Source of the DNA: Octopus sinensis
Lineage: Eukaryota
DNA length: 64,000 nt
Assembly (NCBI RefSeq): GCF_006345805.1
Contig: NC_043006.1
Span: 49,538,001 to 49,602,000, forward strand
Direction of reading: 5' to 3'
Below are positions 1,243 through 58,936 of this stretch, in pieces; positions within the stretch are counted from its first letter, which is position 1; each line of letters starts with the position of its first letter. Below the pieces are notes generated by a model. The model worked only from the letters and a program-made list of their open reading frames with translations, was not told the DNA's origin and ran no database searches. The position numbers and the translations under genes are program-made.

Positions 1243-3105
1243 TTTCCACTCCTTGAAAAGGACGGCACACTCACAGGAAATCCAATGAGAGTAAGTGAAA
1301 TACTAATGAGCAATTCAAGTGTAATTTCACTACCACCCTACGGCATTCAAGTCAGCAATCCAACTGACTTCTTTACCACTGCAGATATAAATAGAGGCAG
1401 CGATGATTGATTACATCAATATAAAGGAAGACGATGTAATAAAGGCTATTGATGAAATGAAAACCAACTCAGCTACTGGCCCCGATGGATTCCCAGCAAT
1501 CCTTCTAAAAGTATGTAAGAGAGTCCTAGCAAGACCACTGCAGTTCCTCTTTCAGAGCTTCCTTGCAACTGGCAAACTTCCAAGAAAACTGAAGGAAGGT
1601 AAAATATTCCCTATTTATAAAAGAGGTAGCAGAGTGGAGGCCAAGAACTACAGACCTATCTCTCTGACCTCACACATCAGCAAGGTCATGGAACGAATAG
1701 TCAGAAGGAAACTAATCACCTTCCTTGAAGAAAATGACTTGCTGCCTGACACCCAACATGGTTTCCGAACAGGAAGAAGCTGCTTAACTCAGCTCCTACA
1801 ACACTATGACTGGGGGTGCTGAAACGACTGCTCAACCACTCAAATGTGGAAGTCATATATCTCGACTTTGCAAAGGCCTTTGATAAAGTCGATCATGGAA
1901 TGATATGTCACAAACTGCGTGATCTTGGCATAGATGGAAAATTGGGAGAATGGCTTCATGACTTTCTGAAGGATAGAAGTCAGGTGGTAGTAGGCAATGG
2001 GGCCACTTCCATTAACACACAAAAGGTGAGCGTCGTTCCGCAAGGCACTGTTCTGGGACCACTACTGTTCATAATGGCCCTCTCAGACATGCCTCCAGCC
2101 ACGCAGAGAGCCACGATCACAAGTTATACAGATGATGCAAAAGTTTCACAGATAATACAGAACCCTGAAGACACTAAGCACCTGCAATGTGAGCTGGACA
2201 AAATATACAAGTGGGCTGAAAATAATAGCATGCAGTTCAATGCTGAAAAGTTTCAAGCTTTATGCTATCAGCATGCAAAACTAAATGCAATACCCAATAA
2301 ATACATTGGACCTGGAGGGATTGCAATCCCAGAGGCACAATCAGTGCGAGACCTGGGTATTTACATGAGTGATGATGCAACCTTTCATGTGCATGTTGCT
2401 AAATTGGCAATGAAATGTAGGTGGCTGACCGGATGGATTCTTAGAATCTTTGGAACAAGAGACCAGGAAACCATGATGGTCCTCTGGAGGACACTTGTCT
2501 TAAGCCACTTTGACTATTGCTCTCAGCTATGGTCACCATCCAGTGTCAAGTTAATCACAGAACTTGAGGCGATCCAACGAAGCTACACGAAGAAGATAGC
2601 CTCTGTGCAGCATATAAGCTATTGGGAAAGACTCAAGAGATTGGGACTCTATTCCTTAGAGCGTAGGCGAGAAAGATATGCCATAATATACATCTGGAAG
2701 ATCCTAGAAGGACTTGTCCCAAACTTTCGCATCGAGAGTTACACAAATGCCAGAACTGGGCGCCACTACATAGTGCCAAGGACTCCAAATTTGCCATCAA
2801 GATGTAGAACAAGATACTGTGATAGCCTGGGCTTCCGAGGCCCACAGCTCTTCAATATCCTCCCGAAGAACCTAAGAGACCTGCATGGGGTGGATGCAGA
2901 TGTCTTTAAAATAAAACTGGATCTATTCTTGTCAGGTGTCCCAGATGAACCAACTTCACGGCAGGAGGTGCAGATGAGGACAGCTGCATCGAACTCTCAC
3001 ATGCACCAAATGGCAATTGCTAAAAAGCATTCGTGAAGTAAAATCATGTAGCAACACCAAAATGCGGTGCCCCAGCATGGCCACAGCTTGTGAGCTGAAC
3101 AAGAT
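1243..3105 (+). mobile_element. 5'-truncated CR1-clade LINE (RT and C-terminus of ORF2), one frameshift near 1816
   Basis: ORFs 1403-1822 and 1816-3036 contain GPDGFP, YRPISLTS, QHGFRTGRSC, YLDFAKAFDKV, VPQGTVLGPLLF, a YTDD RT core and LGLYSLERRR; a short 3' tail ends near 3105. Confidence 0.93.
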
Positions 3106-3295
3106 AATATATAGAATATATATATATATATTATATATATATATTACATACATACCCCTATATAATATATTTATACACATATACACAGAAGGAGATATAT
3201 TTAGCATAAAAAACATAAATATATACAAATGCATATATATGTTTATACGCACACACACGCACGCGCATAAAACCTTCTGGTGTATGCTTATACAA

Positions 3296-6200
3296 AATCG
3301 AAGCGGCCAAAGAAGGCGAAGGAACCGGCGGTCGTTCCTGCACATGATCGTTCTTGTGCGGATTCTTCCTCATCTGCCTTTTCGGTCCCGGAGGTTCCCC
3401 AACCTAGTTCGAGGAGCGTAGACTCAAACCCACCTGAAGACCGTTGTTCTCCCCAAAAGAAGAAACGTAGTCAAAACTCCAGAGGGGCAGATTTGGCTAT
3501 GAAACCTGATCACGATAAAATCTGTTTGGATTCTCCTTCACTTGTCCTTCCCATTAATGCCATTGCTCAACCAATTCTGAACGATCTCGATGTGGGTTCA
3601 TCTGGGGGAGTGTGCTCCCCCAAACCGAAGAAGAGGCAGTGCAGTTCCAAACCAGCGGGAAAATTATGACCACAAATCCATTCCGATCGACCCCACAGGC
3701 CGACATAAGCCGATGGCTATGAAACCACCCTTTCGAAATCCTCCAATGAAGAATCGAATACCGCAGCTCATAGTAGAGACTTTTTGCCCACTCAAGATTG
3801 GCAATAATATATGGCAAGGCTGAATCCACCTGTGATACAGGCATAAACCGCCTAAAAGATGACATTAATTTTGTTTCCGTTTTGGTTGGAAAATTGTTCT
3901 CTGTGAACGAAAATGTCAGTGTTCTTAAGGTCGCTCGGCTAGGAAGATTCCAAGCGAACCCAACCGCAGATACTAGACCACGCCCAATAAGGGTAATCTT
4001 TTCTTCTGATCGGGAGGCTTCAGTCTTTCTGAACAGAGCTCAGACGCATGCCTGGGAGGACCCCAATATGGGTTTTCGCGAGGAATACTCACTAAGAGAG
4101 AGAATTCGCCGGAGGAACCTGATATCCGAGCTAAAGATGAGGAAACAAATGGAGAGAAGGGTTTACGAATCCAAGTGGACATATCAAGTCCTACCTCTGG
4201 TCCCATGCTGTAGTGCTGACAGGAAAGTGATGTGAGGGCAAATCGAAGTGAAGTTGATACCCCCGTCAACGATGCTATCTCTGATGCCCTTTATTCTGTT
4301 TGTGTTCCCAACTCCCGCCCCTCAGACTTCACAGCATCAGCATCGTCTACACCAACTCGTGCTCCTTATTCCCAAAGTTCAGTGAACTATTTACACTGGC
4401 CCTACGCGACTCCCCTGATGTGATAGCTATCACCGAGACTTGGCAGACTCCAGCAGTAAAGGACTCAGAGATCCACCTGCAGGGCTACGTCCTTTTCAGA
4501 TGTGACAGAGGAAAAAGGCGAGGTGGAGGTGTTGCTGTGTATGTTAAGTCTGAGCACAAACCGTCCTGCGGTATTCTACCCACAAATGCTCAACCTACAA
4601 CAAAATTCGATGCCGTCTATTGCAAACTGAGCCTATCTGAGTTTTGCCTGCCCGTGTTGGCTGTCTACAGGCCGCCTCTAGCCGACCCCCAGGACGATGC
4701 TCATCTACTCGAAGCGATAAGATTCGTTTCAGCTTCGCATGACTGCTTGGTACTAGGCGACTTCAACGCTCCCACGATCGATTGGCCCGCATCAATTTGT
4801 ACAACATCTTCCCGGTTCGGCCAGGCCCTTCTTGACGTGGCTGAAGATTGTTTTCTATCGCAACATGTTGAATATCCGACAAGCATCGGTCTGGGCAGCA
4901 GCCATCTATGCTAGATCTGGTATTCTCCCGCTATCCAAGATCAGTGTCAGACGTATCTGTGTGCGCCCCTCTTGCCAAGAGTGATCATGCGGTCCTGAAG
5001 TCGTCACACACAACTTTTTCCACGCCCACGATTACTTCGCTGCCACGTAGAGTCTTCTCTGCAATTAATCTTGAAATTCTAACCGAGGCTTCCGAGCTTC
5101 TGACTGGCGTTCCCTGATGACGTTGTCCTCAGTTGACGAACTATGGTCATCCCTCAAAGCATATGTAATCTGTTTGACTGACCAGGCAGTTCCCGTTGGA
5201 CTTCCCAAGAGGAAGAAACACAAGCCCTGGGTGACGAAGAAGGTTAAACGAGAACGTCGACTCAGAGATATTGCTTGGGCTGAATTCAAAAATCTGGATT
5301 CGACTGCAGCTTTTGAGGTGTACAAAACTCAACGAGACCGAGCCGTGAAAATTGAAAAGAAAAAATTCAGTTATGAATACAAAATCGCGGCAAATGCCAG
5401 TAGCAATCCAAAAACCTTCTTTGCCCATGTCCAGCGGAATTCCCGCTTGAACAACCAGATTGCAACGTTGGTAGACTCAACAGGCGTATCGATTGAGGAC
5501 CCTTATCAACAGAGTCAATTATTTGCCGAGGCTTTTTCAACTATTTTCAAACAAGATGATGGTCGTGAACCCCCTCCATTTGATAGATCGGTACCTCCAA
5601 TGCTTCGATTGATCATCACGCGGGACCAAGTCAAACGTTTATCCAAGGCCTCGATGTCAACAAGGGTCACGGCCCTGACGGCATACACCCACGGTTATCA
5701 AAGCGTTGGCTCCGGTCATCTGCGAGCCCTTAACACGACTATTCAATATGTCATTGGCGACGGGTGTTATACCTGCAGACTGGAGAACAGCGATAATCTG
5801 CCCAATTTTCAAGAAAGGGAGCCGCGAAGACCCGCTTAACTACCGACCGGTTTCCCCTACATCAATAATCAGCAAGATGTCGAAACCATCCTTAAGAAAA
5901 GTATGATGCTCCACCTCCTAAACCCACAGCCTCGATCACTGATTCCCAACACGGCTTCGTGCCGAAGAGATCATGCTTGACCAACTTACTAGTAATGGAA
6001 GAATTGGTGACGTGCATCCTCGATGATAGTGATGCTGTTGACATCGTGTTATTGGACTTTGCCAAAGCTTTTGACTCGGTAAACCACCGCCTACTACTTG
6101 TTAAGCTTCAAGCATATAGTTTCCATCCAGGATATGTACGATGGGTTGGTGCCTTCCTCTCAGATCGCTCCTTCCAAGTTCAAGTTAATGGTTCGCGGTC

Positions 6201-7200
6201 CGACGTCTCCAGTGCGAGCAGTGGCGTGCCTCAAGGTTCAGTGCTTGGGGCCTTGTTGTTCTTAGTCTTCATAAATGACTTGCCCGACGACCTCACGCAA
6301 CACACCCTTCTATTTGCCGACGATATCAAACTGGTCGCTCCTCGCGGTAGTATAGAGGATCTTCGTCGATGCCTCCACCAAATTTGGAAGTGGTCTAACG
6401 ATTGGGACCTGTGTCTGAACGTGTCAAAGTGCTGTCATCTGCCTGTCGGCTCTACTTCTGCAACTCAACTTGATTTCGAGCCGGGTCGTCTGCTGCTGAG
6501 AGGACCGATCAGGTAAAGGACCTGGGTATCTTGGTGGTATTCCTCCTTTTCGCCTTCGGCCCAGTTCGTCCATGCTGCCAACAAAGCGCGCGGAATTCTG
6601 TTTTTGATTCGACGGTCATTCGAATGCTCACAGCAGCCATATTCCTGCCATTCTATGTCACGCTGGTGAGACCCATATTGGAGTATGGGATTCAAGCCTC
6701 TTCTCCTTATCTCCTCAAGACATACAGCACCTCCAAGAGTCCAGAGGCTGGCTACCCGCATGGTTCATGGTCTCAAAAATTTGTCCTACGAAGAAAGGCT
6801 GAGGACGCTCGACCTTTGTTCTCTCTTGAAAAACGCCGCCGCCGTGGTGATCTCATTCTCGCCCACACATCATAAGCGGGAAGTGTAACCTCTCGAAAGA
6901 GCTGTTCTTCACTCCTGCTCCGGAGCGTCGGCTGCGGGGTCATTCCGAAAAGCTCTACCTGCGACGATTTCATCTCAATCGAAGGAGAGGAGCTTTCTCC
7001 GTCCGGGTTGCGGATCCGTGGAACAGCTGCCAGACGAGATGGTGAAGATGCCGACGACCGCTTTGTTCAAAGCCTCCCTGGACCTCAAGTGGCCTGAACT
7101 CTTTACATGAACACCACCCTGTACTTAACTCCATGTCCCCCACATGGCCTTGCTATTGCTTTTGAGCCAAATTAACTAACTAACTAACTAACTAACTAAC
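3296..7200 (+). mobile_element. Near full-length CR1-clade LINE (ORF1 remnant, APE endonuclease, RT), multiply frameshifted, (TAAC)n tail
   Basis: ORF1-type motif RLG..RPRPIRVIF; endonuclease motifs AITETW, RGGGVAVYV, VYRPP, LGDFNAP, SDHAVL; RT motifs LDFAKAFDSV, GVPQGSVLG, FADD; tail (TAAC)7 at 7173-7200. Confidence 0.92.
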
Positions 7201-11040: not shown

Positions 11041-11273
11041 TGACTACCGAGTAATGTAACATATGTATAGATATATATATATACTAGCTGAAGGTGACCG
11101 CATCGTCACCTCATTTTACATGTCCCTGTAAATTTTGGAGTGAATCCGACGGGATGTAGTGGCATTGAAAGCGATCCAAGCGGTCGAACGCATTTCAGTT
11201 TATATAGAGAGAGACTAGCTGAAGGTGACCCGCTCTACGCGCGGGTAAGAAGTGTGGTTGTTACTTTCTGGCT

Positions 11274-11336
11274 AGATAACCGAAGAGATGGTGTTGTGGA
11301 TTTCCACTTCGGCATCTGAAACTCAGAGTTTTATCT
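11274..11336 (+). ncRNA. Type I hammerhead-like motif, third copy
   Basis: Identical to 10978-11040. Confidence 0.55.
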
Positions 11337-11444
11337 TGACTACCGAGTAATGTAACAATATTGTATAGATAATTTCCTCTATTTACATAATATTGAGGTC
11401 TCTTTCTTTCTTTTGTATCTTACTACCGTTTTATCAATATGTAT

Positions 11445-11466
11445 ATATATAATATATATTATATAT

Positions 11467-11546
<80 letters not shown>

Positions 11547-11875
11547 CATATACACATACATATATATAGATCATATGGGTGGCAAATTCGCAATTTTACA
11601 ACCTAAAAGTAGAGATATATACATCAATAAACTCTACATGGGCACTAATCAGCAACAGTATTGCTAGAAATAAGAGTCAAAAAACACAAGAGCAACAAAA
11701 AGCATATATATATATATATATAGCGTATATATACTATAGCATATATAAAAAATAAAGTGATGGTATAGTATTGGATTGGTATAGACATCTTTCTTGATGT
11801 ATTTATATTTAATACTTTCAAAATATATGAATATGACATTGTGCTATGTGTGTGTGTTTCATGATATATATATGT

Positions 11876-11921
<46 letters not shown>

Positions 11922-11933
11922 GTGTATATATAT

Positions 11934-11976
<43 letters not shown>

Positions 11977-12031
11977 TGTTGTGTGTGTATATATATTATA
12001 TATGTATATATATATATGTATATATATATAT

Positions 12032-12069
<38 letters not shown>

Positions 12070-12132
12070 GTGTGTGTGTGTATATATATATATATATGTG
12101 TGTATATATAGATATATGTATATATATATATG

Positions 12133-12163
<31 letters not shown>

Positions 12164-12195
12164 GTGTGTGTGTATATATATATCTATATATAGTG

Positions 12196-12260
<65 letters not shown>

Positions 12261-12261
12261 G

Positions 12262-12292
<31 letters not shown>

Positions 12293-12490
12293 GCTGTATA
12301 TATATATGTGTGATATATATATATATATATATGTGTATATATATATATGCATATATATATATGTGTGATATATATAGATATATATATAGATATGTATATA
12401 TATATATATATAGGTATCTATATATATATTATATGTATATGTATATATGATATATGTATATAATATATATCTATATATATATATATGTGT

Positions 12491-12536
<46 letters not shown>

Positions 12537-12575
12537 CATATATATATATATATGATCATAATATATATATATGAA

Positions 12576-12615
<40 letters not shown>
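11445..12615. repeat. Long degenerate (TA)n/(TATG) microsatellite region with an AT-rich non-repeat island at about 11570-11850
   Basis: Visible directly; source of the IY-repeat ORFs. Confidence 0.95.
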
Positions 12616-12616
<1 letters not shown>

Positions 12617-13146
12617 CACACACCACTTCTCTATAGGTATATCTATGTGTGGTGTTCTTTGTGTTCGTGTTTGTTCCCCACCGCCGCTTGACGGGAATAT
12701 TATTGTATTAGATTTGCTGGTATGAAAGATGAAACCAAATTCAGCAAAATTTTAATTCGGAAACTGGAAAGGGTGTGAGGAAATAGTGCAAAGTATTTTG
12801 TCCACCAGTAATGATTCTACCAATCCTACCGCTTATAATTTTACAACAAAATTATAATAAAGGAGGAACCACTTTAATCCGTTGAGGAATAGGAAAGTGG
12901 ACATTGACAGTGATTAATCAAATCCGTGTTTTTTTAGGTGACCAAGAAATTCTATTGTGAAAAGGAAGTTACAATAAAATGAAAAACATTTTAAATACAA
13001 TTGAAAAACATATTTACCAGAATCATAACAATAGAATTTATTATTCCCCCAATTATTACCTTGTTTATAATCTCTTACTCATATTATAACAGGATACAAA
13101 ATGTCACTCACTGTTCGGCCCTGAATTGAAATGGTATTTCCAAGTT

Positions 13147-13154
13147 TATATAAA
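13147..13154 (+). promoter_or_regulatory. TATA box of P1
   Basis: TATATAAA about 30-36 nt upstream of an Inr-like CAAT/CAGT; conserved at 30247-30254. Confidence 0.6.
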
Positions 13155-13177
13155 TACAGGTGTATAGTTTGTGTTGC

Positions 13178-13254
13178 AATACAGTACTTCGTTTGGTGAA
13201 GACCATATCGCAGCACCTTTAGCGCTTCGTTGTACGCTTTCAGTGAATTGACAG
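13178..13254 (+). other. Predicted non-coding exon 1 of P1
   Basis: Lies between the TATA box and the donor CAG|GTACGT (13254/13255); strongly conserved in copy 2. The start position is approximate. Confidence 0.6.
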
Positions 13255-13912
13255 GTACGTTTTATTTAATACAACTAATGTGTTTCAGTATCTTGACTTC
13301 CTACATTAATAGGTGGTGGTCGGTTTTGTCGTGAAAGTTAGACAAAATAGTTGAGGTGTTTTAGTTAATTTCATTACAAACATTGTTCCTATTTCGAAGT
13401 GGAGTAAATTTCATCAATCTTTCAAAGATCGATGAAATAAATATGAATAAGAGTCTCACATATGCGCACGCACGAACACACACACACACACACACATGCA
13501 CACTCAAACGCGCACCACTTGCACGTGCACACACAGAATGTTGTTCACAGTGACTTCGAAGTTTCGACCAGCTAACCCAAAATCTAGCTGCGATGCATTT
13601 GAGTGAATCTTGCCTTCATATAGTCTCTGTTGCATTGAAATTATCTTTGGGTGTTTGGCTTTGTGTGAGGTGATTATTAGGTTCATACAGTCTGTTGATA
13701 TGGAAAGGTGTTTTGGGAAAATATTTTTATTGATGAAATTTGGGGTTTTGTTATTACTTAGAACTTATTCAGGCATGTTGACCTTTATACATTTGACTTT
13801 TGTATTGCCAAAGCAAAAGGAATAAATCCAACAATACCAAAAGCAACAAAAGTACTGCCATACCTTGTGCCTACCTGACAAAAGAGAAACACCTATAAGA
13901 AGTCTACAATAA

Positions 13913-14313
13913 GGCGCAGGAGTGGTTGTGTGGTAAGTAGCTTGCTTACTAACCACATGGTTCCGGATTCATTCCCACTACGTGGCACCTTGGGAACGTG
14001 TCTTCTACTATAGCCTCGTGCCGACCAAAGCCTTGGGAGTGGATTTGGTAGACGGAAACTGAAAGAAGCTCGTCGTATATATGTATATGTATATATATGT
14101 ATCTGTGTATTTATGTATTTGTGTTTGTACCCCCAACATCGTTTGACAACCGATGCTAAGTTACGTCCCCGTAACTTAGCGGTTCGGCAAAAGAGACCGA
14201 TAGAATAAGTACTAGGCGTCCAAAGAATAAGTCCTGGAGTCGATTTGCGTGACTAAAGGTGGTGCTCCAGCATGGCCACAGTCAAATGACTGAAACAAGT
14301 AAAAGAGTAAAAG
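13913..14313 (+). mobile_element. Full-length tRNA-derived SINE (GGCGCAGGAGTGG type) in P1 intron 1
   Basis: tRNA-like head, central (TA/TG)n, tail GGTGCTCCAGCATGGCCACAGTC..GAAACAAGTAAAAGAG; absent at the homologous site in copy 2. Confidence 0.85.
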
Positions 14314-14735
14314 TAATAAAAACATACGTTCACTACAGTTGAAGAAGCATCGGGTTAGCAGAATCGTAAGCACGCCAGACAGAATTCTAGGCTGTATTTT
14401 TTTCTGGCATCACGTACTGAGTTCAAATTCCGCTGAGGTTGACTTTGTCTTTTACTCATTCGGGGTTGATAAAATGTTCAGCACAGGGATCGATGTAATC
14501 AAGTTCACCTCTATCGGACTTTCAGATCTTATGCCTATAATAGAAATAATTATTACAGCTGGAGCAACTATATGATCATAGGTTAGCACTACCAAGCCTG
14601 GTTTGAGAATATCTGCTATAACAACAACAACATTAAACTTAAACTAATAATTGGACTTTTTTTCTTCTTTATTATTTTGAAGTAGTGAGAAAATATTTAC
14701 ACTGATCGTTCTTATTTTTCTATAGATAACCAATA

Positions 14736-14787
14736 ATGAAGACCACTATCTCTCTTTTGTTTGCTATGCTTTGCCTGTTTGCAGTCG
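14736..14787 (+). CDS. P1 coding exon 1: signal peptide MKTTISLLFAMLCLFAV plus 1 nt (phase 1)
   Basis: Acceptor TTTTTCTATAG| at 14725, ATG 10 nt later, hydrophobic core, donor G|GTGAGT at 14787; nearly identical to 33795-33846. Confidence 0.8.
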
Positions 14788-14979
14788 GTGAGTATGAATA
14801 CACACCATTTAGCTTTATATAATGCAGTATTGGATATTAATACGTGGGAATAATTGTTTCGTCATGCATAATTTATACTTCCAAACAACAATGTATACAT
14901 ATACATACATACGTACATACATATAAACATACATACATAGGCAGACATACATCCACGCACACATAGATATGTGTATGTG

Positions 14980-15018
<39 letters not shown>

Positions 15019-15096
15019 TAAAATTATATAATGTATGTATAATGTATATATATAAATCTCACTGTCTCTTTCTCACTCTCTCTCTTTATATATCTG

Positions 15097-15169
<73 letters not shown>

Positions 15170-16160
15170 GTATCTATCTATCTATCTATCTATCTTAGCC
15201 ATCGGTTAGCTATGCTAGGAGACACTTGACCAAGATAGTGTGCACTAGGATTGAACCCAAAATCACGCTAATGTAAAAATTACCATGCTCACATACTCAA
15301 TGTATGTGTTTGGCTCTCTCGCCGGTTCATTGTCGAACAGCACTTTGGAGACGACTTCCTCAAAACACTGGATGTTAAAACACCTGAATGTCATAAACAA
15401 GCTAGACAACTACCTTCCAATTCCATTTATGAGTGATGGATATTTCGCCATTTTTCTGGCGAAATGTCGAATCACCAGTCTATGACTATATACAAATAGT
15501 GTAATAACCATTTCCTGGTATGCCATGATAATGCTTACTTAAGATTAAATTCAATTACGAATGTGTATTATTAGTTCTGAATTTTGGCTCAAGGCGTCAA
15601 ACACCACCGCTCTCAATGAATATTAACATTTATATAAATGTCATATGGAGGTGATCTGGGAAAATCTTTAGCCTGTCGGTCACAAAGCTTAGCGGTATTA
15701 TTTCCGTCTCTACGTTCTGTACAGTAATTCCGTCGAGATCCACTTTGCCTTTCATCCTTTCGGAGTCGATAAAACAGTACCACTTGAACACTGGGTGTCA
15801 ATGCAATCGTTTTACCTCTTACCCCTGAAATTGCTGGCCTTGTGCCAATAGTTGGAATCATTATGAATATAAATTAAAGGGGGTGAGCTGGCAGAATCGT
15901 TAGCATGTCGGGTTCAATGCTTAGTTACACTACATCAGTACTTATGTTCTGAGTTCAAATTTCGCCGATGTCAATTTGCCTTTCATTAGTTCGGGGTCGA
16001 TAAAATAAATAACAGTCGAGCAATTGAGTTGATCTAACCGACTTATTCTTCCTCCGGAATTTCTACCTTTGTGTTAAAAAAAAACTGTAATCATTATTTA
16101 TAGATATGTATATTAATGTGTTTTTTTTTTAGTTTATCCTTTCAACATTTCATATTTCAG

Positions 16161-16345
16161 CTTATAATTGCCCTGCCGCTGCAAAGGTACCTGCAGCAGT
16201 TGCTGAGGCACCTGCCGCTGTAGATGTCGCCGCACCAGAAGTTGCCGCCGCAAATGCACACCTGGCAGCTGATGCCGCACACGTAGCCCCCGCAAATGAG
16301 GCAGCCCTTGCTGATGTTGTTGCAGCTGCCCCACACCGGCGATAA
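16161..16345 (+). CDS. P1 coding exon 2: Ala-rich mature peptide (A)YNCPAAAKVPAAVAEAPAAVDVAAPEVAAANAHLAADAAHVAPANEAALADVVAAAPHRR*; precursor 78 aa
   Basis: Acceptor TTTCATATTTCAG| at 16160; the phase-1 join gives an A-V-A|Y signal-peptidase site; GC-rich exon in an AT-rich background; Arg-TAA end aligns with P2. Confidence 0.75.
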
Positions 16346-17224
16346 AATAAAAGAATGGCCGAATTCTAATGCAAGCGATCAAGTAGCATACTTCCTTGGG
16401 CCATCATTTTTCGCCAGCTACGAAATCATCGCAAACGTAGTCCCCCATCATGAAAACGATAAAGAAATAAGTAGACAAACAACACCCACTTCCACATACT
16501 GCTGTTTAATAAATCAATAAGTGTAACTACAATAACAATATTCAATTAGTAATTGAGTTTGATGGAATATTCTGGAAGTGGAACCAACTATATTTCAATA
16601 ACGTCAGTGATGTTTAAGTATTAATTCCAAGACATTTGTAAAGAGTAAATTTTATTGAAATAAACATAAATTATTTTATCATATCTTTCTTTTGTCTTCT
16701 TTATTGCTCTCTAAACAAATTTATCACAAAATAAAAAAAATTCATAAAGATTTATTTATTTCAGTCATTGGACTGCATTTATACTGGGGTGCCACCTAGA
16801 AATGTCTTAGTCAAACAAGTCTATCGCAGTACTTTCTTTATAATCCTGTTACTTATTCTATCGGCGTCTTTTGCCAAATTGCAAAGTTATGGGGACATAA
16901 ACAAACCGACACCGGTTGTTGACGAGAAACATGAAAAAATGCACGCACACGCGCACACACGTACATAATATAATATATGATATAATATATACATTTAGTA
17001 CGGGCTTCATTCAGTTTCCCTCAACCAAATTCACTCTCCAGACTTTGGTTAACCTGGGGCTGCAGAAGAACACATTTGACCAAAGTGTCACGCGTTGGGA
17101 TAAAGTCCTAAATCATGTTGTAGGGAAGCAATGTTCTTACCACACAGCTAGGCTTCCCCCCATTTTGTATATCTGTAAAAAATGAAATGAAATTGGTATC
17201 TAATTCACTTAGTATCATAAAAAC

Positions 17225-28576: not shown

Positions 28577-29300
28577 CACACACACATACATTATATATAC
28601 ATATTTATATATAGAACACACACACACACACACATACATTATATATACATATTTATATATAGAACACACACACACACATACATTATATATACATATTTAT
28701 ATATAGAACACACACACACATACATTATATATACATATTTATATATAGAACACACACACACACACATACATTATATATACATATTTATATATAGAACACA
28801 CACACACACATACATTATATATACATATTTATATATAGAACACACACACACATACATTATATATACATATATATATAGAACACACACACACACACACACA
28901 CACATATAAATGAACGCAAGAATATCTGATTCATAATATTTGTTCTCATGCTCGTGTGTTGATTGTTGGTGACAGACATATACTTCAAAGAACGCCGCCG
29001 AAGTGATAGGAAGGTAGGAAACAGAGTCAGTGAAAAAGAAAGGAAATAGCGATAGTGACAGATACTTTAAATAACCGTAGTGGCATTCTGAAAGTTATAA
29101 ATGAAGAGGAGTGACAGAGTACTGGAGGAAATAGGGTGAGGTAGGAAGATGGCCCCTAGAAACCACAGCTTTTAAGATAGGGATTTCTAAGGTAGCCCAC
29201 GCGCATCGTCACCTCATTCTACATGTCCGTGTAAATTTTGGAGCGAATCGGACGGGATGTAGTGGCATTGAAAGCGAACCAAGCGGTAAAAGGCATTTCA

Positions 29301-29358
<58 letters not shown>

Positions 29359-29669
29359 ATATTTAAAATCCTTCGAAGCGGTAAGCCCACATTAGCCCAG
29401 CATGGCCCTGAATGACTGACAAATATTAATAAAAAGCAACATAAACAATATAGAAATAATTTTCATTTTGTGTCTTTTATTTGTTGCAAACGGTTCACTT
29501 TCTAATTCCTATATTTTCAGGAATTTGCAGAAGTTGAACTTAAATATATAGTTATCAACGATACTTATTGTCGATAATTTTTATCCAGTGTCCTTCGTAT
29601 CTCGTATCACTTCAACTCCCTTCTTTCATAGACACAGTATATCTGCGTTGCTAAACTTACTTGCATAAT

Positions 29670-29732
<63 letters not shown>

Positions 29733-30246
29733 TGGAACATTTTGAATCTGTGCTTCTTGGATTAGAGCTGATAGAGTTAAACAAGAAACACAAGCCAAGA
29801 AAATGCTTTCGTTGACCTCAAGTTCATGACTGGAACATTATTGTATTAAATTTGTTGGTATGGAAGATAAAACCAAATTCAGCAAAATTTAAATTCGGTA
29901 AGTGAAAAGGGAGTAAGGAAATAGCGCAAAGTATTTTGTCCACCTCAAATGATTCTATCAATCTTACCGCCTTTACAACAAAATTATAATAAAAGAGGAA
30001 TCATTTTTGTCCGTTTAGGATTAGGAATGCAGACATTGACAGTAATTAATCAAATCCGTGTTCAAGGTTTATTTTGGTGACTATGAAATTCTATTGTGAA
30101 TAAAATGAAAGCATATTTACCAGAATCATAACAAAAGAATTTATTACTCAGCTCATTCTTCTTTATAATCTCCTACTCACATTATAACAGGATATAAAAT
30201 ATCACGGTTCTGTTCGGCCCTGAACTGAAAAAGGTATTTCCAAGTT

Positions 30247-30254
30247 TATATAAA
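30247..30254 (+). promoter_or_regulatory. TATA box of P2
   Basis: TATATAAA at the position homologous to 13147. Confidence 0.6.
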
Positions 30255-30277
30255 TACAAGTGTATAATTTCTGCAAC

Positions 30278-30354
30278 AATACAGTCCTTCCTTCGGTGAA
30301 GACCATATCGCAGCACCTTTAGTGCTTCGTTGTACGCTTTCAGTGAATAGACAG
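30278..30354 (+). other. Predicted non-coding exon 1 of P2
   Basis: Donor CAG|GTACGT at 30354/30355; homologous to P1 exon 1. Confidence 0.58.
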
Positions 30355-31588
30355 GTACGTTTTATTTAATACGACTAATGTGTTTTAGTATCTTGACTTC
30401 CTACATTAATAGGTGGTGGTCATTTTTGTCAAGAGAGTTAGGCAAAATAGTTGAAGGTTTTTAGTTAATTTTATTACAAATTTGGTTCCTATTTCGAAGT
30501 GGAGTAAATTTCATCTATCTTTCAAAGATCGATGAAATAAATATGAATAATAGACTCACATATGCGCACGCGAACACACACATACACACACACAAACACA
30601 CGCAAACACACATGCGCACAAACGCACACACAAACACACATACACAAACGCACAAGCACAAACACACACATACACACACACGCGCAAACGCACACGCAAA
30701 CGCGAAAACACACACACGCAAACACACGCAGATGCGAAAACGCACAAGCGTACACACATATATTTTGATGTATATTATGTGTGTATGTGTTGTGCTTGTG
30801 TGTATGTGTGTACGCGCGTGTGCGCGCGCGTTTGTGTGTGTACACAGCACACACACATTATGCTTCTACAAGAATGTTGTTCACAGTGACTTCGAAGTTT
30901 CGACAAGCTAACCCAACGTCTAGCTGCGATGCATTTGAGTGAGTCTTGCCTTCATATAGTCTCTGTTGAGTTGAAATTATCTTTGGGTGTTTGGCTTTGT
31001 GTGAGGTGATAATTAGGTTCATACAGTCTGTTGATATGGAAAGGTGTTTTGGGAAAATATTTTTATTGATGAAATTTGGGGTTTTGTTATTACTTAGAAC
31101 TTATTCAGGCATGTAGAACTTTATACCTTTGACTTTTGTATTGCCAAAGCAAAAGGAATAAATCCAACAATACCAAAAGCAACAAAAGTACTGCCATACC
31201 TTGTGCCTACCTGACAAAAGAGAAACACCTGCAGGCTTGAAAAAAAATGTGTGTAGTACTATGTACAAGAAGTCTACAGTAAACATACGGTGACTACTAT
31301 TGAGGAAGCATCGGGTTAGCAGAATTATAAGCACCCCAGTCAGAATACTAGGCTGTATTTTTTTTTTCTGGTTTCACATACTGAGTTCAAATTCCGCTGA
31401 GGTCGACTTTGTCTTTCACTCTTTCGGGGTCGATACTGGGGTCGATGTAATGAAGTTCACCACTCACAAACTTTCAGATCTTATGCCTTTAATAGAAATA
31501 ATTATTACAGCTGGAGTAACTTTGATCATAGGTTAGCACTACCAATCCTGGTTTGAAGTAAATCGTGGTAACAACTATAAACTAATAA

Positions 31589-33731
31589 CACAACGTTACA
31601 ATTTTCAAAAAAAAAAAAAATTGTTTATTGTAATTTTTTTTTATTGTTTATCAATCCATTTTTTCTGCTGATTACAAAACTGAAATTATTTTTTGTGTAT
31701 CATCAACAGTTAAAAAAATATGTCGACTTTCAATGTTATCATATATTCGGTATTGTTATAATGTTCCGCTACTAAATGCATGTCTAATTTTCTCTTTCAG
31801 ACAAATTACTAAGTTCTGCTACTTTCAGAATGCCTACTAGAGTATGTAAAAATTCTCCAGATACATTTTGCTGTGTGTGGTTATTATATTGAAAACAAAG
31901 CAGGTATTACATAAGATCGTGAGAGGTACCAAATTGTGGATAGCGTACAGACTCTATTTCGGAATGCCCATGGGTGAACAGGACAAACCATGGGTCCCAC
32001 ATGTGATATGTGTAAGCTGTCGATCTACTCTAGAAAGATGGTTAAGAGGTACAGGAAGGTCAATGCTTTTTGCCATTCCAAGGGTATGGAGAGAGCCAAA
32101 GAACCATCACGATGACAGAAAAGTGAAAGGAAGACAATTTCTACGGTATCCAGACATACCACCATCTAGAGCACCTGTCCCACATGATGACAGTTTACGA
32201 GTACCACTACCACCAGAAAATATTTCATCTGAAGAGTCAACAAGTAGCAGCATCCAACAAATGGAGGAGGCTTTCGTACCAAGAACGAATTCGGAGCCTC
32301 ACTTTCCAAATCAGAGTGAGCTAGATGATTTAATTAGGGATCTGGGTCTTACTAAGTAAGGAGCTGAACTTCTTTCATCATGGTTGAAGGAATGAAATCT
32401 ACTGGGAGAAGACTGCAAGACATCTGTGTACCGGAAACGCCATGAAGAATTTGAAATTTACTATGAAAATATTAATGTTCAGTGTTATTGTAAAGATATG
32501 ATTGGTTTGTTTACTGCTATTGGACTCAAGCATGATTCTGTAGAATGGCGACTGTTCATAGATAGCTCAACACGAAGCCTCAAAGTAGTGTTATCCCACA
32601 ATGGAAATAAATATCATTCTTTGCCTCTTACACACTCCATACAGAAGAAAGAAAATTACGATAATGTCAAAGAACTTCTCGACAAAATAAATTACGCTGA
32701 GTTCAAGTGGGATGTTTGTGGTGATTTCAAGATGCTTGCTTTCTTGCTTGGCTTGCAAGGGGGATACAGAGTATTCATGTTTCCTTTGCTTATGGGACAG
32801 CAGAGCTGATGATGATCATTACAAGAGAGTACATTTGGGACCCATGAGTGGAACTGCAGCCAGGAATGTTAAATGTTCTCAAACATCCTTTAGTAGATTA
32901 CAACAAAATCTTATTACCCCCCCCCCCTTCATATCAAACTCGGATTGGTAAAACAGTTTATGAAGGCCTTAGATTTGTCTTATGTTTCAAGGGTGGCATA
33001 TTTGTTGGGCCCCAAGTAACTAAAGTCGAAGAAACTGGAAAGAGCGATGACAAAAGTTGGAAAAGAAGCTTGGTGTGCTTTTCATGATGTAGTTCGTGGA
33101 TTCCTAGGAAATCACAAGGATCCTAATTACAAACAGCTGGTAGCAAAACTTATTGAAAACTTCAAGAAAATGGGTTGTCGTATGTTCTTAAAGGTTCATT
33201 TTTTGCACTCTCACCTAGATTTTTTCCCCGAAAACTTGGGTGATGTCAGTGAGGAGCATGGTGAGAGATTTCATCAGGACATCGCAACTATGGAAAGAAG
33301 ATACCAAGGACGATGGAATACTGCTATGATGGGAGGTTATATATGGTCTCTAGTCAGAAGAGATGAAGGTATACACTCCAGCAAATCTCGATCGTCAAAG
33401 CACTTCTCATCTTAAGAAACAAATTATCAAGGCACTTACAGTGCAGAATTTTATTGTTTCTTTTTCTTCTAACTAATATTATACATCCTAAATACCTTTC
33501 AATATATGAAAAAGTACTTAATGTTGTGTAATTATCCTTACAACACGAGAAGAGATTGAACCAACAAAGTGATGTGGAGAAAAATTACAAATATAACGAG
33601 TAAATATGAAATTAGGAATAAATAGATAACTCTCGATGTTTTCAAAATGAATGGGACTTTTGAATTTAGTGGTAAAAAAAAGCATGTATGAACATTAAAA
33701 AATACAAATAAACAGTACGTGTTATATTGTG
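31589..33731 (+). mobile_element. Chapaev3-like (CMC) DNA transposon, 2143 bp, in P2 intron 1
   Basis: Termini CACAA...TTGTG with imperfect TIRs of about 12 bp; TAA duplicated at 31586-31588 and 33732-33734; P1 has the empty site AAACTAATAA-TTGGA. Confidence 0.8.
31830..33415 (+). pseudogene. Disrupted Chapaev-type transposase
   Basis: MPTRVCKNSPDTFC..CG, EQDKPWVPHVICVSC, WREPKNHHDD, CGDFKMLAFLLGLQGG, GIFVGPQ, HFLHSHLDFFPENLGDVSEEHGERFHQDI; several stops and frameshifts. Confidence 0.82.
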
Positions 33732-33794
33732 TAATTGGAGTATAGAAAGAAAATATTTACTGTGATTGCTATTATTTTCTATAGATAACCAATA

Positions 33795-33846
33795 ATGAAG
33801 ACCACTATCTCTCTTTTGTTTGCTATGCTTTGCCTGTTTACAGTTG
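33795..33846 (+). CDS. P2 coding exon 1: signal peptide MKTTISLLFAMLCLFTV plus 1 nt
   Basis: Acceptor TTTTCTATAG| at 33784 and donor G|GTGAGT at 33846; 16 of 17 residues identical to P1. Confidence 0.78.
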
Positions 33847-34091
33847 GTGAGTATGAATACACACCAATTAGTTTTATATAAAGTAGCAGTGGATATTAAC
33901 TACTAGGGAATAATACTTTTACAATTCCAAAAAACAATGTATATATCCATATACATACATACGCACATACATACATACATACATACATACATACATACAT
34001 ACATACATACATACATACATACGTACATACACACATATACATAGATATGTGTGTTTGCGTTGATATATATATATATATATATATAATATAT

Positions 34092-34141
<50 letters not shown>

Positions 34142-34927
34142 ATATAACGTAAGAGAGGGAGGAGAAACAGATTTCTTCATCCACATTCAAACTCACTTTC
34201 TAATCTGTCGTTGGGCCAAATATCGGCAAAATATGTATGTATATACAAAGACAAAGAAAGGGAGAAAGAGTAGTTAAAGCCAAACTCCAACGTGTTGAAT
34301 GGCCGTTGTTTTTGTAAAAATAAAAATAAAATAAAACCAACGGACTTTTCTTCTTGGTACGAAAATGATGTAAGGCGGACAAAATAAATGAAGTCGATTT
34401 TATTAGTTACTGTGGTCAATACAAAGCTAGTTTCACGATTAATGTACAAACTAAATAAATCAATTTTTTAAAAATTAATTTATTTTTGAAGCACATGTTT
34501 TGATCTTTAGTTATATATATAATATTATAAGAAAAAATATGAATAACTATAAAACATATTTACCTTCATTTATCCACATCAATTCGTAACCTAAAGTATT
34601 CGGTATAATGCAAACAGTAAGAGAGGGAGAAGAAATAGACTTCATCCACATTCAAACACGCTTTCTAATCTGTCGCTGGGGTCAATGTAATTGACTTACT
34701 TCTTCCTCCGAAATTGCTGGTGTGTTCTGAGTTCAAATTTCGATTTGCTTTTCATTATTTCGGAGTCGATAAAATAAGTACCTGCTGAGCATTGGAGTCG
34801 ATCTAATCAACTTACCCTTCCTCCGGAATTTCTACCTTTGTGCTAAAAACAATGTGAACAGTATTCATACATTTGTATATTAATGTGTGTTTTGTTTATT
34901 TCGTCCTTTGAACATTTTATATTTCAG

Positions 34928-35055
34928 TATATAACTGCCTTGTTGCTGCTGCAACCACTGCAAAGGTACTCGCAACAGATGCAACCCACGCAACAGGTGC
35001 AGACTACTTAAATGGAACAAGCTATATGCTATTCCTGTATGCCAAAGACAGATAA
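34928..35055 (+). CDS. P2 coding exon 2: (V)YNCLVAAATTAKVLATDATHATGADYLNGTSYMLFLYAKDR*; precursor 59 aa
   Basis: Acceptor TTTTATATTTCAG| at 34927; YNC start, AKV motif and Arg-TAA end align with P1; 3' UTR conserved. Confidence 0.68.
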
Positions 35056-35492
35056 GATAAAAGAATGGGCGAATTCTCATGCAAACGATCAAGTAGACGT
35101 AGTAACTTGGGTCATCATTTTTCGCCAGCTATTTCGATTAGTAATTGAGTTTGATGGAATATTCTGGAATTGGAACCAGCTATATTTCAGTAACGTCAGT
35201 GATGTTTAAGCATTAATTCCAAGACATTTGTAAAGAGTAAATTTTATTGAAATGGACATAAATTATTTTATCATATCTTTCTTTTGTCTTCTTTATTGCT
35301 CTCTAAACAAATTTATCACAAAATAAAGTACTTCATAAAGATTTCTTTGTTTCATTCATCGAACTGCGGCCATACTAGGGTGCCACCTTGAAATGTTTTT
35401 GGTCAGATGACTTCAAATTTTGACAACATGTGTAGAAATAGCTCAAAAGGTTATGTTTATTGTTTGATATGTTTTTCTTTTCAGGTATAGAA

Positions 35493-40819: not shown

Positions 40820-41475
40820 TTAACCACGTATATATAAATATAAACAAACTGACATTTGTTTTTTATAAGCACCAAAATGTGTATAAGAAACAAATAAAAT
40901 GATAATTTATTTTCGAATGCAGAAACGCCGCTAAAAGAATAGAAACATAAGGTAAATTACCCTTACAAAGAGGAAAAAATTTGTCAACAGACGACCATGG
41001 GACCCGAATCCATATCTCTTGATATGACCCCGGCCAAGTGCTTTACCATTAAGCTAAATTGCCGGCCAACAAATTAACCTGCTTTTTAGATGCTTTTAAA
41101 ACTAAATGTCTAACAAGCGGAAAAAATTGTTAACAGACAACTATGAGTAATTTACCCAATGTTTTTGCTGTTCAAACGGTGTCTCTGCGTTCGAAAATAA
41201 ATTGTCATCACATTTCAGGGGTTATAAAAAAACAAATGTTAGTTTGTTTATATTCATACACACGTGGTTGCACATTCAGCTTTAAAAGCGTTTAAAAAGC
41301 GGATTAATTTGTCAGCGGGCAGTTTAGCTTAATGGTAAAGCACTTGGCCGGAGTTATAAGGGTTCGAGTCCCATAGCTGTCTGTTGACAAATTCTTCCGC
41401 TTTGTAAAAGTAATTCACCCAATATTTCTACTGCTTTAACGGCGTCTCTGCATTCGAAAATAAATTATTATCTTA
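40820..41475. repeat. Unit of about 290 bp with a tRNA-like head, in inverted and tandem-permuted copies
   Basis: 40820-41110 is the reverse complement of 41150-41475 (permuted); A-box TAGCTTAATGG and B-box GGTTCGAGTCC at about 41325-41372. Confidence 0.7.
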
Positions 41476-55996: not shown

Positions 55997-58936
55997 TGAC
56001 GTTTTGGCGGCGAGGTTGGCCCTCGACCAACACTTCAACGCCAAACACGAAGGATGTGCTGTCAGAGCTAGGATGCGTGCTTTAAGGAACGAAGGTGTTG
56101 GAGCCGCGAGAGAGGCCCGGGTGGCAGAGGCGCAACAGGGCAACAAAGCCACCATTCGGTCCCTGGTAGATGAACAGGGGCGCGAATTGCTCGAGCCAAG
56201 TAAAATGTGTGAGGCCTTTCAGCAGCATTTTGCCCGACTGTTCGGAACGAGTGGAGGGCAAGAACGTAGGGTGGACTTCAGTGCCTACCTACATAGCCTA
56301 CCACGACTCTCGACAAGAAAGGCAGGGTGCTGCGAAGGTGCCATCACGGCGGCGGAAGTGCAGGAAGCGATGGCAGAATGCTCGAGGGACAAATCACCGG
56401 GTTTGGATGGTCTACCCTACGAGCTTTACAATTGTATGCCAGACTTGTTTGGAGATCTCTTGGCGGCGGTGTACTGCAACTGGCAGCAAAACGGGAGCAT
56501 TCCTGGTTTTGTGAGCCGAGGAGCCGTAACACTGCTGAAGAAAGATCTAAACAAGGGAAATGTAATAGATAACTTTAGGCCCATCACTCTGCTTAATGCA
56601 GACTTGAAAATTTTGGCCAAGGTGCTAGCCAAGAGGTTGGCGCTTGTCATCGAGAAACTGGTCGACAAGGCGTAAACATGCGCCGTGCCGGGCCGGACCA
56701 TCCATGAAAACCTTCACCTGATGCGCTACATCATAGACAAGGTAGTTAACGAACCTGGCATGGGTGTGGCGCTGATCAATTTGGATCAATCGAAAGCTTT
56801 CGATAGGGTAGACCATCGATACTTGGAGAAGGTTCTCAGAGCGGCTGGCTTCGGTCCCGTCTTCCGCGGCTGGATAGCCGCTTTGTACAGAGGCATCCGT
56901 TCGGTAATTCGCGTGAATGGACATCTATCGAGACCCTTCGACATCGCACGTTCGGTCCGTCAGGGATGCCCCCTATCGTCGCTTCTATACGTATTGACTC
57001 TCGAGCCATTATTGCGGAAGCTGGCAACTTTGAGGGGCATCCCGCGAGAACTGGGATGCGGGACGAGCGTGTCTGCATACGCGGACGACGTGACCGTCAT
57101 AGTGTCTAGCCAGGAGCACATCGAGCAGGTCGGCGAGACACTGAAAAACTACGAAGCGGTGGGTGACAGGAGCGAAAATCAACCGGGAAAAGTCAGTGGC
57201 TTGCGACTAGGCACCTGGAGAAGCAAGCCCATGCCGTCCACCAGCGCCTCCGTCGTGGACGCTGGACCGACGGCCCAGTTGAGTTGTGGGTGCTGGTTTG
57301 GTCCGAACCTCCAGTGGAAAGTGGAGACGGAGAACTCGGTAAGTGGAGAGAAACTGAGATAACGAGTAGGGTGGTCACTCTCGCCCGGCAATGGGCCGAG
57401 GAGGAAACTGTCCCTAAAAGGTCGAGCGGAGGTGGCGAACACGTACATCGCGTCCGTCATCTACTACCGCCTGACCGTCGTACTTTGTCCCGACCCTACC
57501 ATCACCAAACTACAACGCATTCTCTTTCGCTTCTTGTGGAAAGGATGCGTCCCGATGGTCAGGCGATCCATTTGCTGTCAACACCCGTTAAAAGGAGGAC
57601 TGGGCATGCCGTGGTTGATGATGCGCAGACACACGCTGAGACTGCGACATCTCAGGCTCTTCGTAGACGACGGTGAACAGGTGTGGTCGCCGTTTGTGAG
57701 GCACGCTTTCCCGCAGCTCGTCTCCATGACCGAACTGCAGTCGTGGATAAAAAAAAGGCCGAGGAAGGGCGAATGGCACCGCGAGTGTCGCGTTGCTCTC
57801 AAGCAACTCTGCCGTCCTGGGTCGACCTTGAGTGACTTCAACACAACCAAAGCATTCTATAGGGGATTAGTGGAGGGGAGGTACGACGACGAGCTCGGGG
57901 CCAACCTGGACGTCGACGAGGAGTACCTGACCCGCCTGCTCAGGATGAATTTCGGGCCAGGGCCCATGGATAACTTCCAGAGATCCCTGGCCTGGCAGTG
58001 CTACCGAGAAGCGCTACCCGTTCGGGATAAGCTCTACAGACACGGCTCGAGAAACACGGGGTCAACCTGCCCGAGATGCGGTCAGAGCGACGAAACCGTT
58101 CTGCACGCACTCGTGCAGTGTCCAACAATTTCCGACCTGTGGGCTTATGTCGAACAACTGCTGTCACGTGTGGGACGAGTCGGTTTATCAGCTGAGTCTA
58201 TCGTCAATATTGTCACGCCTCTTTCCTTCAAACGGGAAGGAAGAGCTATTTTCATCATCCTTGTGGCTATGGCGAAAGAATGTATCTGGTGGACGCGTCT
58301 GAAAGGATTGGAGACAAACACTTTCCTCTCTGGTCAATCTCTCATCAACTTCTTCAAGTACCACTTGAAAAGGAAAGTGAGAGTAGAAAGGCAAGTTTTG
58401 TCTAGCGAATGTTTTAAAAAAAGATGGGTGAATGTAGCAAGGATGGCACGTATGAATGACGAAGCCACCTTGAGCATAATCCTATGAACCCAGAAATTGA
58501 AAACAGAGGGTTACCACTTGCAAACAAATGTGGTAACATATAACAATATTGACCAAGGTTACCGTGGTCTTTTTCGGCTTTTCTTCCCACGGATAAACCT
58601 TACTTGCTTTCCCCTTACACCATATATCATAACACTGTGATACACGATCCCTATTGATCGTTTTTATTCCTCTTCCCCTTTTTTTCTTTTTTTCATTTCT
58701 CTTTTCTTTTGTTCCTTTTCCTTTTCTTTCTTTTTTTCTTTTTATTCTTTTTATTTTTTATTTTATTTATTTATTTTTTTTTGTTCTTTTCTTCCCTTTT
58801 ACGATCCCTCTTGATCGAAAACCTACGCCACCTCCTTTTTTTCTTTTGTTTTTTGTTTTTTTCATCCCCCCAAAGAAAAGCTCTACCTTGTAACTTGTCC
58901 CATCTGTGTGCAGACCTGTGTGGCCAATAAAGAGAC

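Follow-up and report, generated by a model that had tools for sequence, protein, structure and literature searches.

Background

In the conotoxin-type superfamilies of cone snails, the signal exon and the non-coding parts of the gene are conserved between paralogues, while the mature peptide, which shares the last exon with the 3' untranslated region (3'UTR), is encoded by a stretch that diverges several times faster than the introns. The precursors contain a propeptide and a cysteine framework, and many paralogues are present per genome. The linear antimicrobial precursors of amphibian skin and of mussels likewise join a conserved secretory leader to a short, probably helical mature part that looks unrelated between members. 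Fishes produce small secreted Ala-rich products, the type I antifreeze proteins and the Ala-Ala-Thr glycoproteins, and cephalopod genomes hold orphan genes for small secreted proteins, which constitute a category and not a family.

Within a window of 64 kb (the whole stretch of octopod DNA that was analysed), we describe two copies, P1 and P2, of a gene in which one coding stretch has diverged far more than everything around it. An initial annotation of P2 had read the locus as a diversifying secreted-peptide family of the conotoxin or antimicrobial-peptide type, with the caveat that P2 might be decaying. That interpretation is weighed here against four others.

Results

Gene pair and gene model

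Self-comparison of the window revealed a same-strand duplication of about 6 kb (Table 1). P1 and P2 are paralogous copies standing 18.6 kb apart on one strand, with ATG and stop at 14736 and 16345 in P1 and at 33795 and 35055 in P2, and neither gene had previously been annotated. The alignments bear out that they are true paralogues in which the signal exon and the non-coding flanks have been conserved. There are two copies only, with no third in the 64-kb window.

The most economical model is a three-exon gene, in which a non-coding exon 1 is followed by a 62-nt signal exon and by a last exon that holds both the mature peptide and the 3'UTR. The putative promoter is marked by a TATA box, and about 100 nt downstream of it both copies carry the donor GACAG/GTACGT (13254 in P1, 30354 in P2). 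TATA box and exon 1 together are identical at 97 of 108 positions and precede the ATG exon by about 1.5 kb in P1 and 3.4 kb in P2; by eye, exon 1 contains no ATG in either copy. The acceptor of the ATG exon consists of a pyrimidine tract followed by ctatag/.

The coding sequence (CDS) of P2 comprises 33795-33846 and 34928-35055, joined in phase 1 (GTTG/gtgagt ... tttcag/TA), and its predicted product of 59 residues is MKTTISLLFAMLCLFTV-V-YNCLVAAATTAKVLATDATHATGADYLNGTSYMLFLYAKDR. That of P1 comprises 14736-14787 and 16161-16345 and specifies 78 residues, the leader being MKTTISLLFAMLCLFAV-A and the mature part 60 residues long. In exon 3 the frame of the gene is the sole open frame in both copies and ends at the same TAA, the difference in length amounting to 57 nt, or 19 codons; exon 3 of P1 has a strong G-C-N codon periodicity. 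P2 bears no disabling lesion: the TATA box, all four splice sites, the ATG, the homologous stop and the AATAAA are intact and the frame is open. The AATAAA at 16730 (P1) and 35322 (P2) is the only one common to both copies. P1 has an extra AATAAA right after its stop (16346), which P2 lacks, and the 120 nt of P1 3'UTR that are missing from P2 have no other copy in the window.

Table 1. Features of the duplicated unit in the 64-kb window, with identity between P1 and P2 where available
Feature	Position	Strand	Identity, P1 vs P2	Remarks
P2 copy of the duplicated unit	29202-35399	+	79-97 %	collinear self-BLAST blocks, offset 17-19 kb; partner 11099-16808
Upstream of TATA			88-89 %	
TATA box of P2	30247-30256	+	identical	TATATAAATA; P1 13147-13156; putative promoter element
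Predicted non-coding exon 1 of P2	30278-30354	+		start approximate; donor GACAG/GTACGT at 30354/30355; P1 ~13178-13254
TATA and exon 1			90 %	
Intron 1, 5' part			90-93 %	
360-nt block in intron 1	30871-31230	+	350/360 (97.2 %)	P1 13535-13894; highest identity within the unit
SINE part of intron 1			89 %	
P2-only 2.2-kb insert in intron 1	31557-33747	+		three broken ORFs of a repeat-type metazoan protein; absent from P1
Exon 2 (signal exon) of P2	33785-33846	+		10 nt of 5'UTR, ATG 33795, 17 signal-peptide codons and 1 nt; acceptor ctatag/, donor G/GTGAGT
Exon 2 (signal exon) of P1	14726-14787	+		ATG at 14736
Intron 2 of P2	33847-34927	+		shared 5' end, (ATAC)n and (AT)n microsatellites, P2-specific middle, shared SINE-like fragment 34723-34927 adjoining exon 3
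Intron 2 ends			85-88 %	
Coding part of exon 3 of P2	34928-35055	+		-1 residue, 41-aa mature peptide, TAA; hyper-diverged island
Coding part of exon 3 of P1	16161-16345	+		-1 Ala and 60-aa mature peptide, Ala 27/60, ends HRR-stop; GC 0.60
3'UTR of P2	35056-35345	+	88 % (35056-35131), 94.8 % (35133-35345)	AATAAA 35322-35327, homologous to P1 AATAAA at 16730
3'UTR of P1	16346-16755	+		120 nt (16421-16540) absent from P2

Predicted peptides and search for relatives

Read from the sequence, the leader has the n-h-c organization of a signal peptide, with A-V-A at positions -3 to -1 in P1, and both products are predicted to be secreted. P2 has Val at -1, which would make a poor signal-peptidase site and weakens the predicted cleavage; its specific four-codon insertion (V-A-A-A) may offer small-residue -3/-1 sites a few residues downstream. 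The signal exon is spliced straight onto Y-N-C..., with no propeptide, spacer or upstream basic cleavage site between them. The mature peptide of P2, with 41 residues, an ATD-ATH-ATG run and an NGT sequon, has YNC, AKV and the final R-stop in common with that of P1. These features, together with the exon coordinates, the translation and the 16/17 identity of the signal peptides, had been described in the initial annotation and were confirmed.

Each mature peptide contains one Cys. The net charge is -3 in P1 and 0 in P2, and the maximum hydrophobic moment 0.22-0.23. In P1, which is 45 % Ala, devoid of Thr and without periodicity above shuffles, residues 1-24 of the mature part are predicted as coil (Pro-containing) and residues 25-55 as a confident helix of 31 residues; the single-sequence AlphaFold model of P2, one helix at a pLDDT of ~77, is uninformative. 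By these properties the putative peptides are unlike both the toxins built on a cysteine framework and the antimicrobial peptides of cationic type.

A combined P1 and P2 profile gave no hit at E <= 10 against 5.8 billion clustered proteins, a collection apparently without the source species' genes. Two profile matches among 1.84 billion representatives were rejected as translated tandem-repeat artefacts (23 weak stretches). Neither copy matched Pfam; PDB yielded nothing for P1 and chance hits only for P2 (E ~0.4). Metagenome scans with a degenerate signal-exon pattern and a 3'UTR 25-mer returned 0 matches, and in the literature we found no mention of the signal peptide string or of a 15-mer of the SINE, a keyword search also returning nothing relevant. 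Lack of homologues in collections that apparently omit the source species' genes is weak evidence for lineage restriction. At the RNA level, a structured element in the 3'UTR was unsupported (z = 0.11), the weak Rfam hits all lying in microsatellites.

Introns, insert and flanking repeats

The initial annotation held that the introns and the 3'UTR align well, which is accurate for the 3'UTR (88-95 %) and for the ends of intron 2. Within that intron, between signal and mature exons, alignment is confined to the two ends and to the microsatellites (14788-14890/33847-33935 and 15945-16160/34723-34927), and the middles are copy-specific. The SINE-like fragment beside exon 3 is present in both copies and thus predates the duplication. 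A 67-nt direct repeat of 88 % identity (34149-34215 and 34617-34680) brackets about 400 nt of P2-specific sequence in intron 2; it may have originated by duplication on the spot or mark the two ends of a small insertion.

P2 carries an insert of 2.2 kb that P1 lacks and that breaks the homology between the copies just upstream of the signal exon. The initial annotation is corrected in that the gene has a further, non-coding exon upstream, so that the insert falls in intron 1, 5' of the signal exon. Its broken ORFs occupy 31868-32359, 32426-32809 and 33047-33415, the first of which matches uncharacterised multi-copy proteins (shrimp, sponge and many other contigs) at 45-74 % identity. Since these matches are to multi-copy proteins from very different animals, the insert appears to be repeat-derived and is probably a degraded mobile-element gene; no TIR or TSD was found, and there is no second copy in the 64-kb window.

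The 360-nt block in intron 1 includes two runs of 103 nt without a difference, in surroundings of 85-90 % identity. Neither of its strands has a long ORF, and no Rfam match reached the gathering score. Candidate identities are a gene-conversion tract, a regulatory element of the intron, and an exon or RNA that has escaped annotation.

The window as a whole is AT-rich and full of microsatellites, SINE-like repeats, which may resemble octopus SINEs, and LINE fragments. Fragmented non-LTR retrotransposons with endonuclease, reverse transcriptase and zf-RVT domains occupy 1403-6516 and 56004-58487; among named taxa, the octopod Argonauta hians has the closest relative of the reverse-transcriptase ORF at 1816-3036 (61 %), the others reaching <=50 %, which suggests that the source genome is that of an octopod. 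Rfam tRNA matches above gathering score at 40989-41063 (-) and 41318-41382 (+) were not called by ARAGORN; they probably represent SINE heads of tRNA origin or tRNA pseudogenes. The assembly has a gap at 909-1008, written as 100 N.

A hyper-diverged island in the mature-coding stretch

Nowhere in the duplicated unit is divergence greater than in the coding part of exon 3. All other aligned parts taken together are identical at 1903 of 2106 positions (90.4 %) with 21 gap events; a forced global alignment of the exon 3 CDS gives 85 of 127 with 8 gap events (Fisher p = 4e-12), a gap-event density about 4.5 times that elsewhere in the unit. In 120-column windows, identity inside the island is 0.38-0.47, whereas the lowest window in the rest of the unit scores 0.57 and the median there is 0.89. 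The claim that the coding exon has diverged more than its non-coding flanks is thereby borne out, the divergence being some 3-4 times beyond the local neutral level.

Four parts can be distinguished. The first ~40 nt, which include the 12-nt insertion of P2 (GTT GCT GCT GCA), are anchored in the alignment by an exact CTGCAAAGGTAC; blastn aligns only the first ~22 nt of the CDS. In the second part, P2 LATDATHATGADY has a plausible P1 partner, LAADAAHVAPANE, with 23 of 39 nt identical, but the similarity lacks significance, since 182 of 2000 shuffles do as well and a second register ties. The third, the P2 tail YLNGTSYMLFLYA, is without any similarity to P1. The last ~15 nt and the stop realign, and identity is back to 88 % immediately past the stop. 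Similarity between the central 71 nt of P2 and 137 nt of P1 is no better than that of shuffles, and in the coding ends that do align the divergence is about 24 % by hand count.

The initial annotation had named neutral decay and repeat slippage as processes that might account for the exon divergence. Neutral point decay can be excluded for both copies, since the island lies several times beyond the local neutral distance (K ~0.10-0.16). Tandem-repeat slippage is unsupported: TRF found no array in either exon 3 and no lag exceeded codon-shuffled controls, the CDS being compositionally biased (GCN codons) and not tandemly repeated. Derivation of the P2 tail from frame-shifted P1 was also without support in any of the frames, all of which were checked.

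Elsewhere in the predicted transcript the deviation is in the opposite direction. The signal exon is identical at 60 of 62 nt (50 of 52 in its coding part), its 2 differences being fewer than expected from the adjacent intron (binomial p = 0.006), and the same applies to the distal 3'UTR, with 11 differences in 213 nt (p = 3e-5). Such excess conservation points to constraint acting on both copies, or else to gene conversion.

Discussion

The explanation that we rank first among five, tentatively and at somewhat less than even likelihood, is that P2 is an intact, fast-drifting duplicate of a weakly constrained secreted-peptide gene. P1 and P2 would be copies of a lineage-restricted TATA-box gene of three exons in which the signal peptide is followed directly by the mature peptide. 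Since the duplication, identity would have stayed at 85-97 % in the signal exon, in the 3'UTR and in the flanks, both regulatory and intronic, while the mature stretch would have been remodelled by frame-preserving length changes (+12 nt close to the 5' end, but 57 nt fewer overall) and by many, mostly amino-acid-changing substitutions, including recurrent exchange between Ala (GCN) and Thr (ACN), until in the C-terminal third the resemblance to P1 was gone. The most likely cause would be that an Ala-rich peptide of biased composition, for the most part unstructured, is weakly constrained: because such a sequence tolerates indels and replacements, the copy may drift fast and the gene nonetheless remain intact and, as we predict, probably expressed. 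In its favour are the collinear duplication, the intact signals and single shared frame of the two copies, the conserved signal exon and distal 3'UTR, the concentration of divergence and gap events in the CDS, the lack of a repeat signal beyond codon composition, and an omega that does not exceed 1 on the reliable codons. Counting against this explanation are the Val at -1, the weakly informative open frame of P2 and the extent of the divergence, which is too large for relaxed point substitution at the local neutral rate and hence calls for extra mutational events or for selection.

Selection is the centre of the next explanation, that of a larger secreted-peptide family (venom-like, antimicrobial or signalling) whose mature exon is under diversifying selection while the signal and the non-coding parts are conserved. 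We consider it unlikely, although it accommodates the contrast between a nearly unchanged signal exon, a 3'UTR of 88-95 % identity and a mature CDS at 38-47 % column identity, as well as the retention of frame and stop despite 8 gap events. The initial annotation had suggested comparing dN/dS and indel rates. The indel comparison points to the island (8 gap events against 21 in all the rest). For the signal codons dN is 0.03 and dS 0.09; for the whole mature part they are nominally 0.50 and 0.31 (omega 1.6), but this value comes from a match-optimised alignment of two sequences whose middle is at chance level. Across the 13 safely aligned codons about 6 non-synonymous and 3 synonymous changes (hand count) give an omega of ~0.8, with both rates seemingly above intron level on very small numbers. 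Diversifying or positive selection in the mature part is thus not demonstrated by these figures, and we infer relaxed constraint instead. The paralogy of the two copies and the conservation of their signal exon agree with the family proposed in the initial annotation; diversification does not follow from the reliable codons, and the finding of two copies in 64 kb, with no relatives in protein collections that apparently omit the source species' genes, counts within that range against a larger family. The single Cys, the lack of a propeptide and of positive charge and the low hydrophobic moment likewise fit poorly with it.

Recurrent Ala/Thr differences deserve separate mention, as they could be directional. 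Ala (GCN) in P1 stands opposite Thr (ACN) in P2 at about 7 positions, including A16T in the leader, AA/TT before AKV and three A-A-x/A-T-x triplets (33840 and 34928-35000 in P2; 14781 and 16161-16290 in P1). The 7 Ala/Thr against 2 Ala/Val differences (binomial ~0.09) hint at directionality, within an unpolarised comparison of two copies, and the recurrence could reflect mutational strand bias or selection for hydroxylated (glycosylatable) residues.

It is also doubtful that P2 is dead or dying, with one or a few complex deletion-plus-filler events having replaced the middle and tail of the mature region and the frame being open by chance. Replacement fits better than gradual change with the central 71 nt and the tail, neither of which resembles P1 above shuffles, and the tail is AT-rich like the surrounding genome (GC of the CDS 0.44 in P2, 0.60 in P1). 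An open frame of the P2 length arises in ~11 % of composition-matched shuffles and in 12 % of neighbouring non-coding 123-nt windows; with a chance probability of about 0.1-0.2, the open frame is weak evidence of function (p ~0.1). The Val at -1 and the AT-rich, unalignable tail are in favour of decay, and the 2.2-kb insert in intron 1 may be added to them; the caveat of the initial annotation that Val at -1 weakens cleavage was fair. Against decay, every signal for transcription, splicing, start, stop and polyadenylation is intact, the stop is homologous, the net indel length is a multiple of 3, and differences are fewer in the signal exon and the 3'UTR than in intron sequence. Moreover, no source of the filler is detectable within the 64-kb window, and the alignable coding ends are themselves raised in divergence. 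The intactness of P2, alongside the conserved signal exon and distal 3'UTR, is suggestive of continued function.

An older duplication whose non-coding parts and signal exon were homogenised by gene conversion, leaving the mature CDS to show the true age of the pair, is in our estimation very improbable. Such a history would fit the patchiness of the identity, with 97.2 % in the 360-nt block, 94.8 % in the distal 3'UTR and 96.8 % in exon 2, against 85-89 % elsewhere. Directly beside the island, however, lie the non-coding segments of lowest identity (85 % and 88 %), not fresh tracts, and copy-specific insertions persist in both introns; homogenising some 6 kb while sparing about 130 nt is also unparsimonious.

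That neither copy is protein-coding, the ORFs being incidental in a duplicated non-coding stretch or a long non-coding RNA, is equally remote, for although there is no homologue, annotation or domain and the CDS is the least conserved part of the putative transcript, the n-h-c signal peptide with A-V-A at -3 to -1 in P1, the phase-matched splice sites, the single open frame of both copies, the G-C-N periodicity of P1 and the properly placed TATA box and AATAAA all stand against it, as does a 3'UTR with no RNA-structure signal and no Rfam matches.

Comparison with known systems

With the conotoxin-type superfamilies, compared here by their general features and not by sequence, P1 and P2 share the conserved signal exon and non-coding parts and the placement of a rapidly diverging mature stretch on the last exon with the 3'UTR. 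They differ in having no propeptide, no cysteine framework (one Cys) and no sequence similarity, and in being seen as two copies in 64 kb of octopod DNA. Akin to the linear antimicrobial precursors, they combine a conserved secretory leader with a short, probably helical mature part of unrelated appearance, but the charge of -3 or 0, the hydrophobic moment and the lack of an acidic propiece and of an upstream Lys-Arg site set them apart. The likeness to conotoxins and antimicrobial peptides put forward in the initial annotation therefore holds for the pattern of divergence and not for the peptides themselves.

P1 also recalls the fish antifreeze products as a small secreted Ala-rich peptide with a confidently predicted helix of 31 residues, and P2 carries three A-T-x triplets where P1 has A-A-x, as in the Ala-Ala-Thr antifreeze glycoproteins. 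Type I antifreeze proteins exceed ~60 % Ala, with an 11-residue Thr/Asx periodicity and one long helix, whereas P1 has 45 % Ala, no Thr and a helix confined to residues 25-55; P2 has three triplets only, and the pair shows no PDB match and no significant internal repeat.

P1 and P2 also resemble the orphan small secreted protein genes of cephalopods, which are likewise short, equipped with a signal peptide, devoid of homologues outside the lineage, locally duplicated and embedded in repeat-rich DNA. P1 and P2 might belong to an Ala/Thr-rich orphan family of this kind, with a mature exon made focally hyper-divergent by in-frame indels and Ala-to-Thr changes, the latter possible O-glycosylation sites, and the remainder conserved; we regard this as improbable. 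Were it true, a diversification regime like that of cone snails would have arisen independently in an octopod, in a class of peptides without a cysteine framework. If expressed, the pair would add an unannotated, lineage-restricted secreted-peptide gene to a cephalopod genome and offer an uncomplicated case in nature of a coding island that outpaces its own introns severalfold. With 2 kb of aligned non-coding flank, it carries a built-in neutral yardstick and, given orthologues and transcripts, is suited to the question of selection versus local mutation. In relation to the systems described above, P1 and P2 appear to be a new orphan pair of peptides, predicted to be secreted, Ala-rich and partly helical, that displays a pattern of divergence already known.
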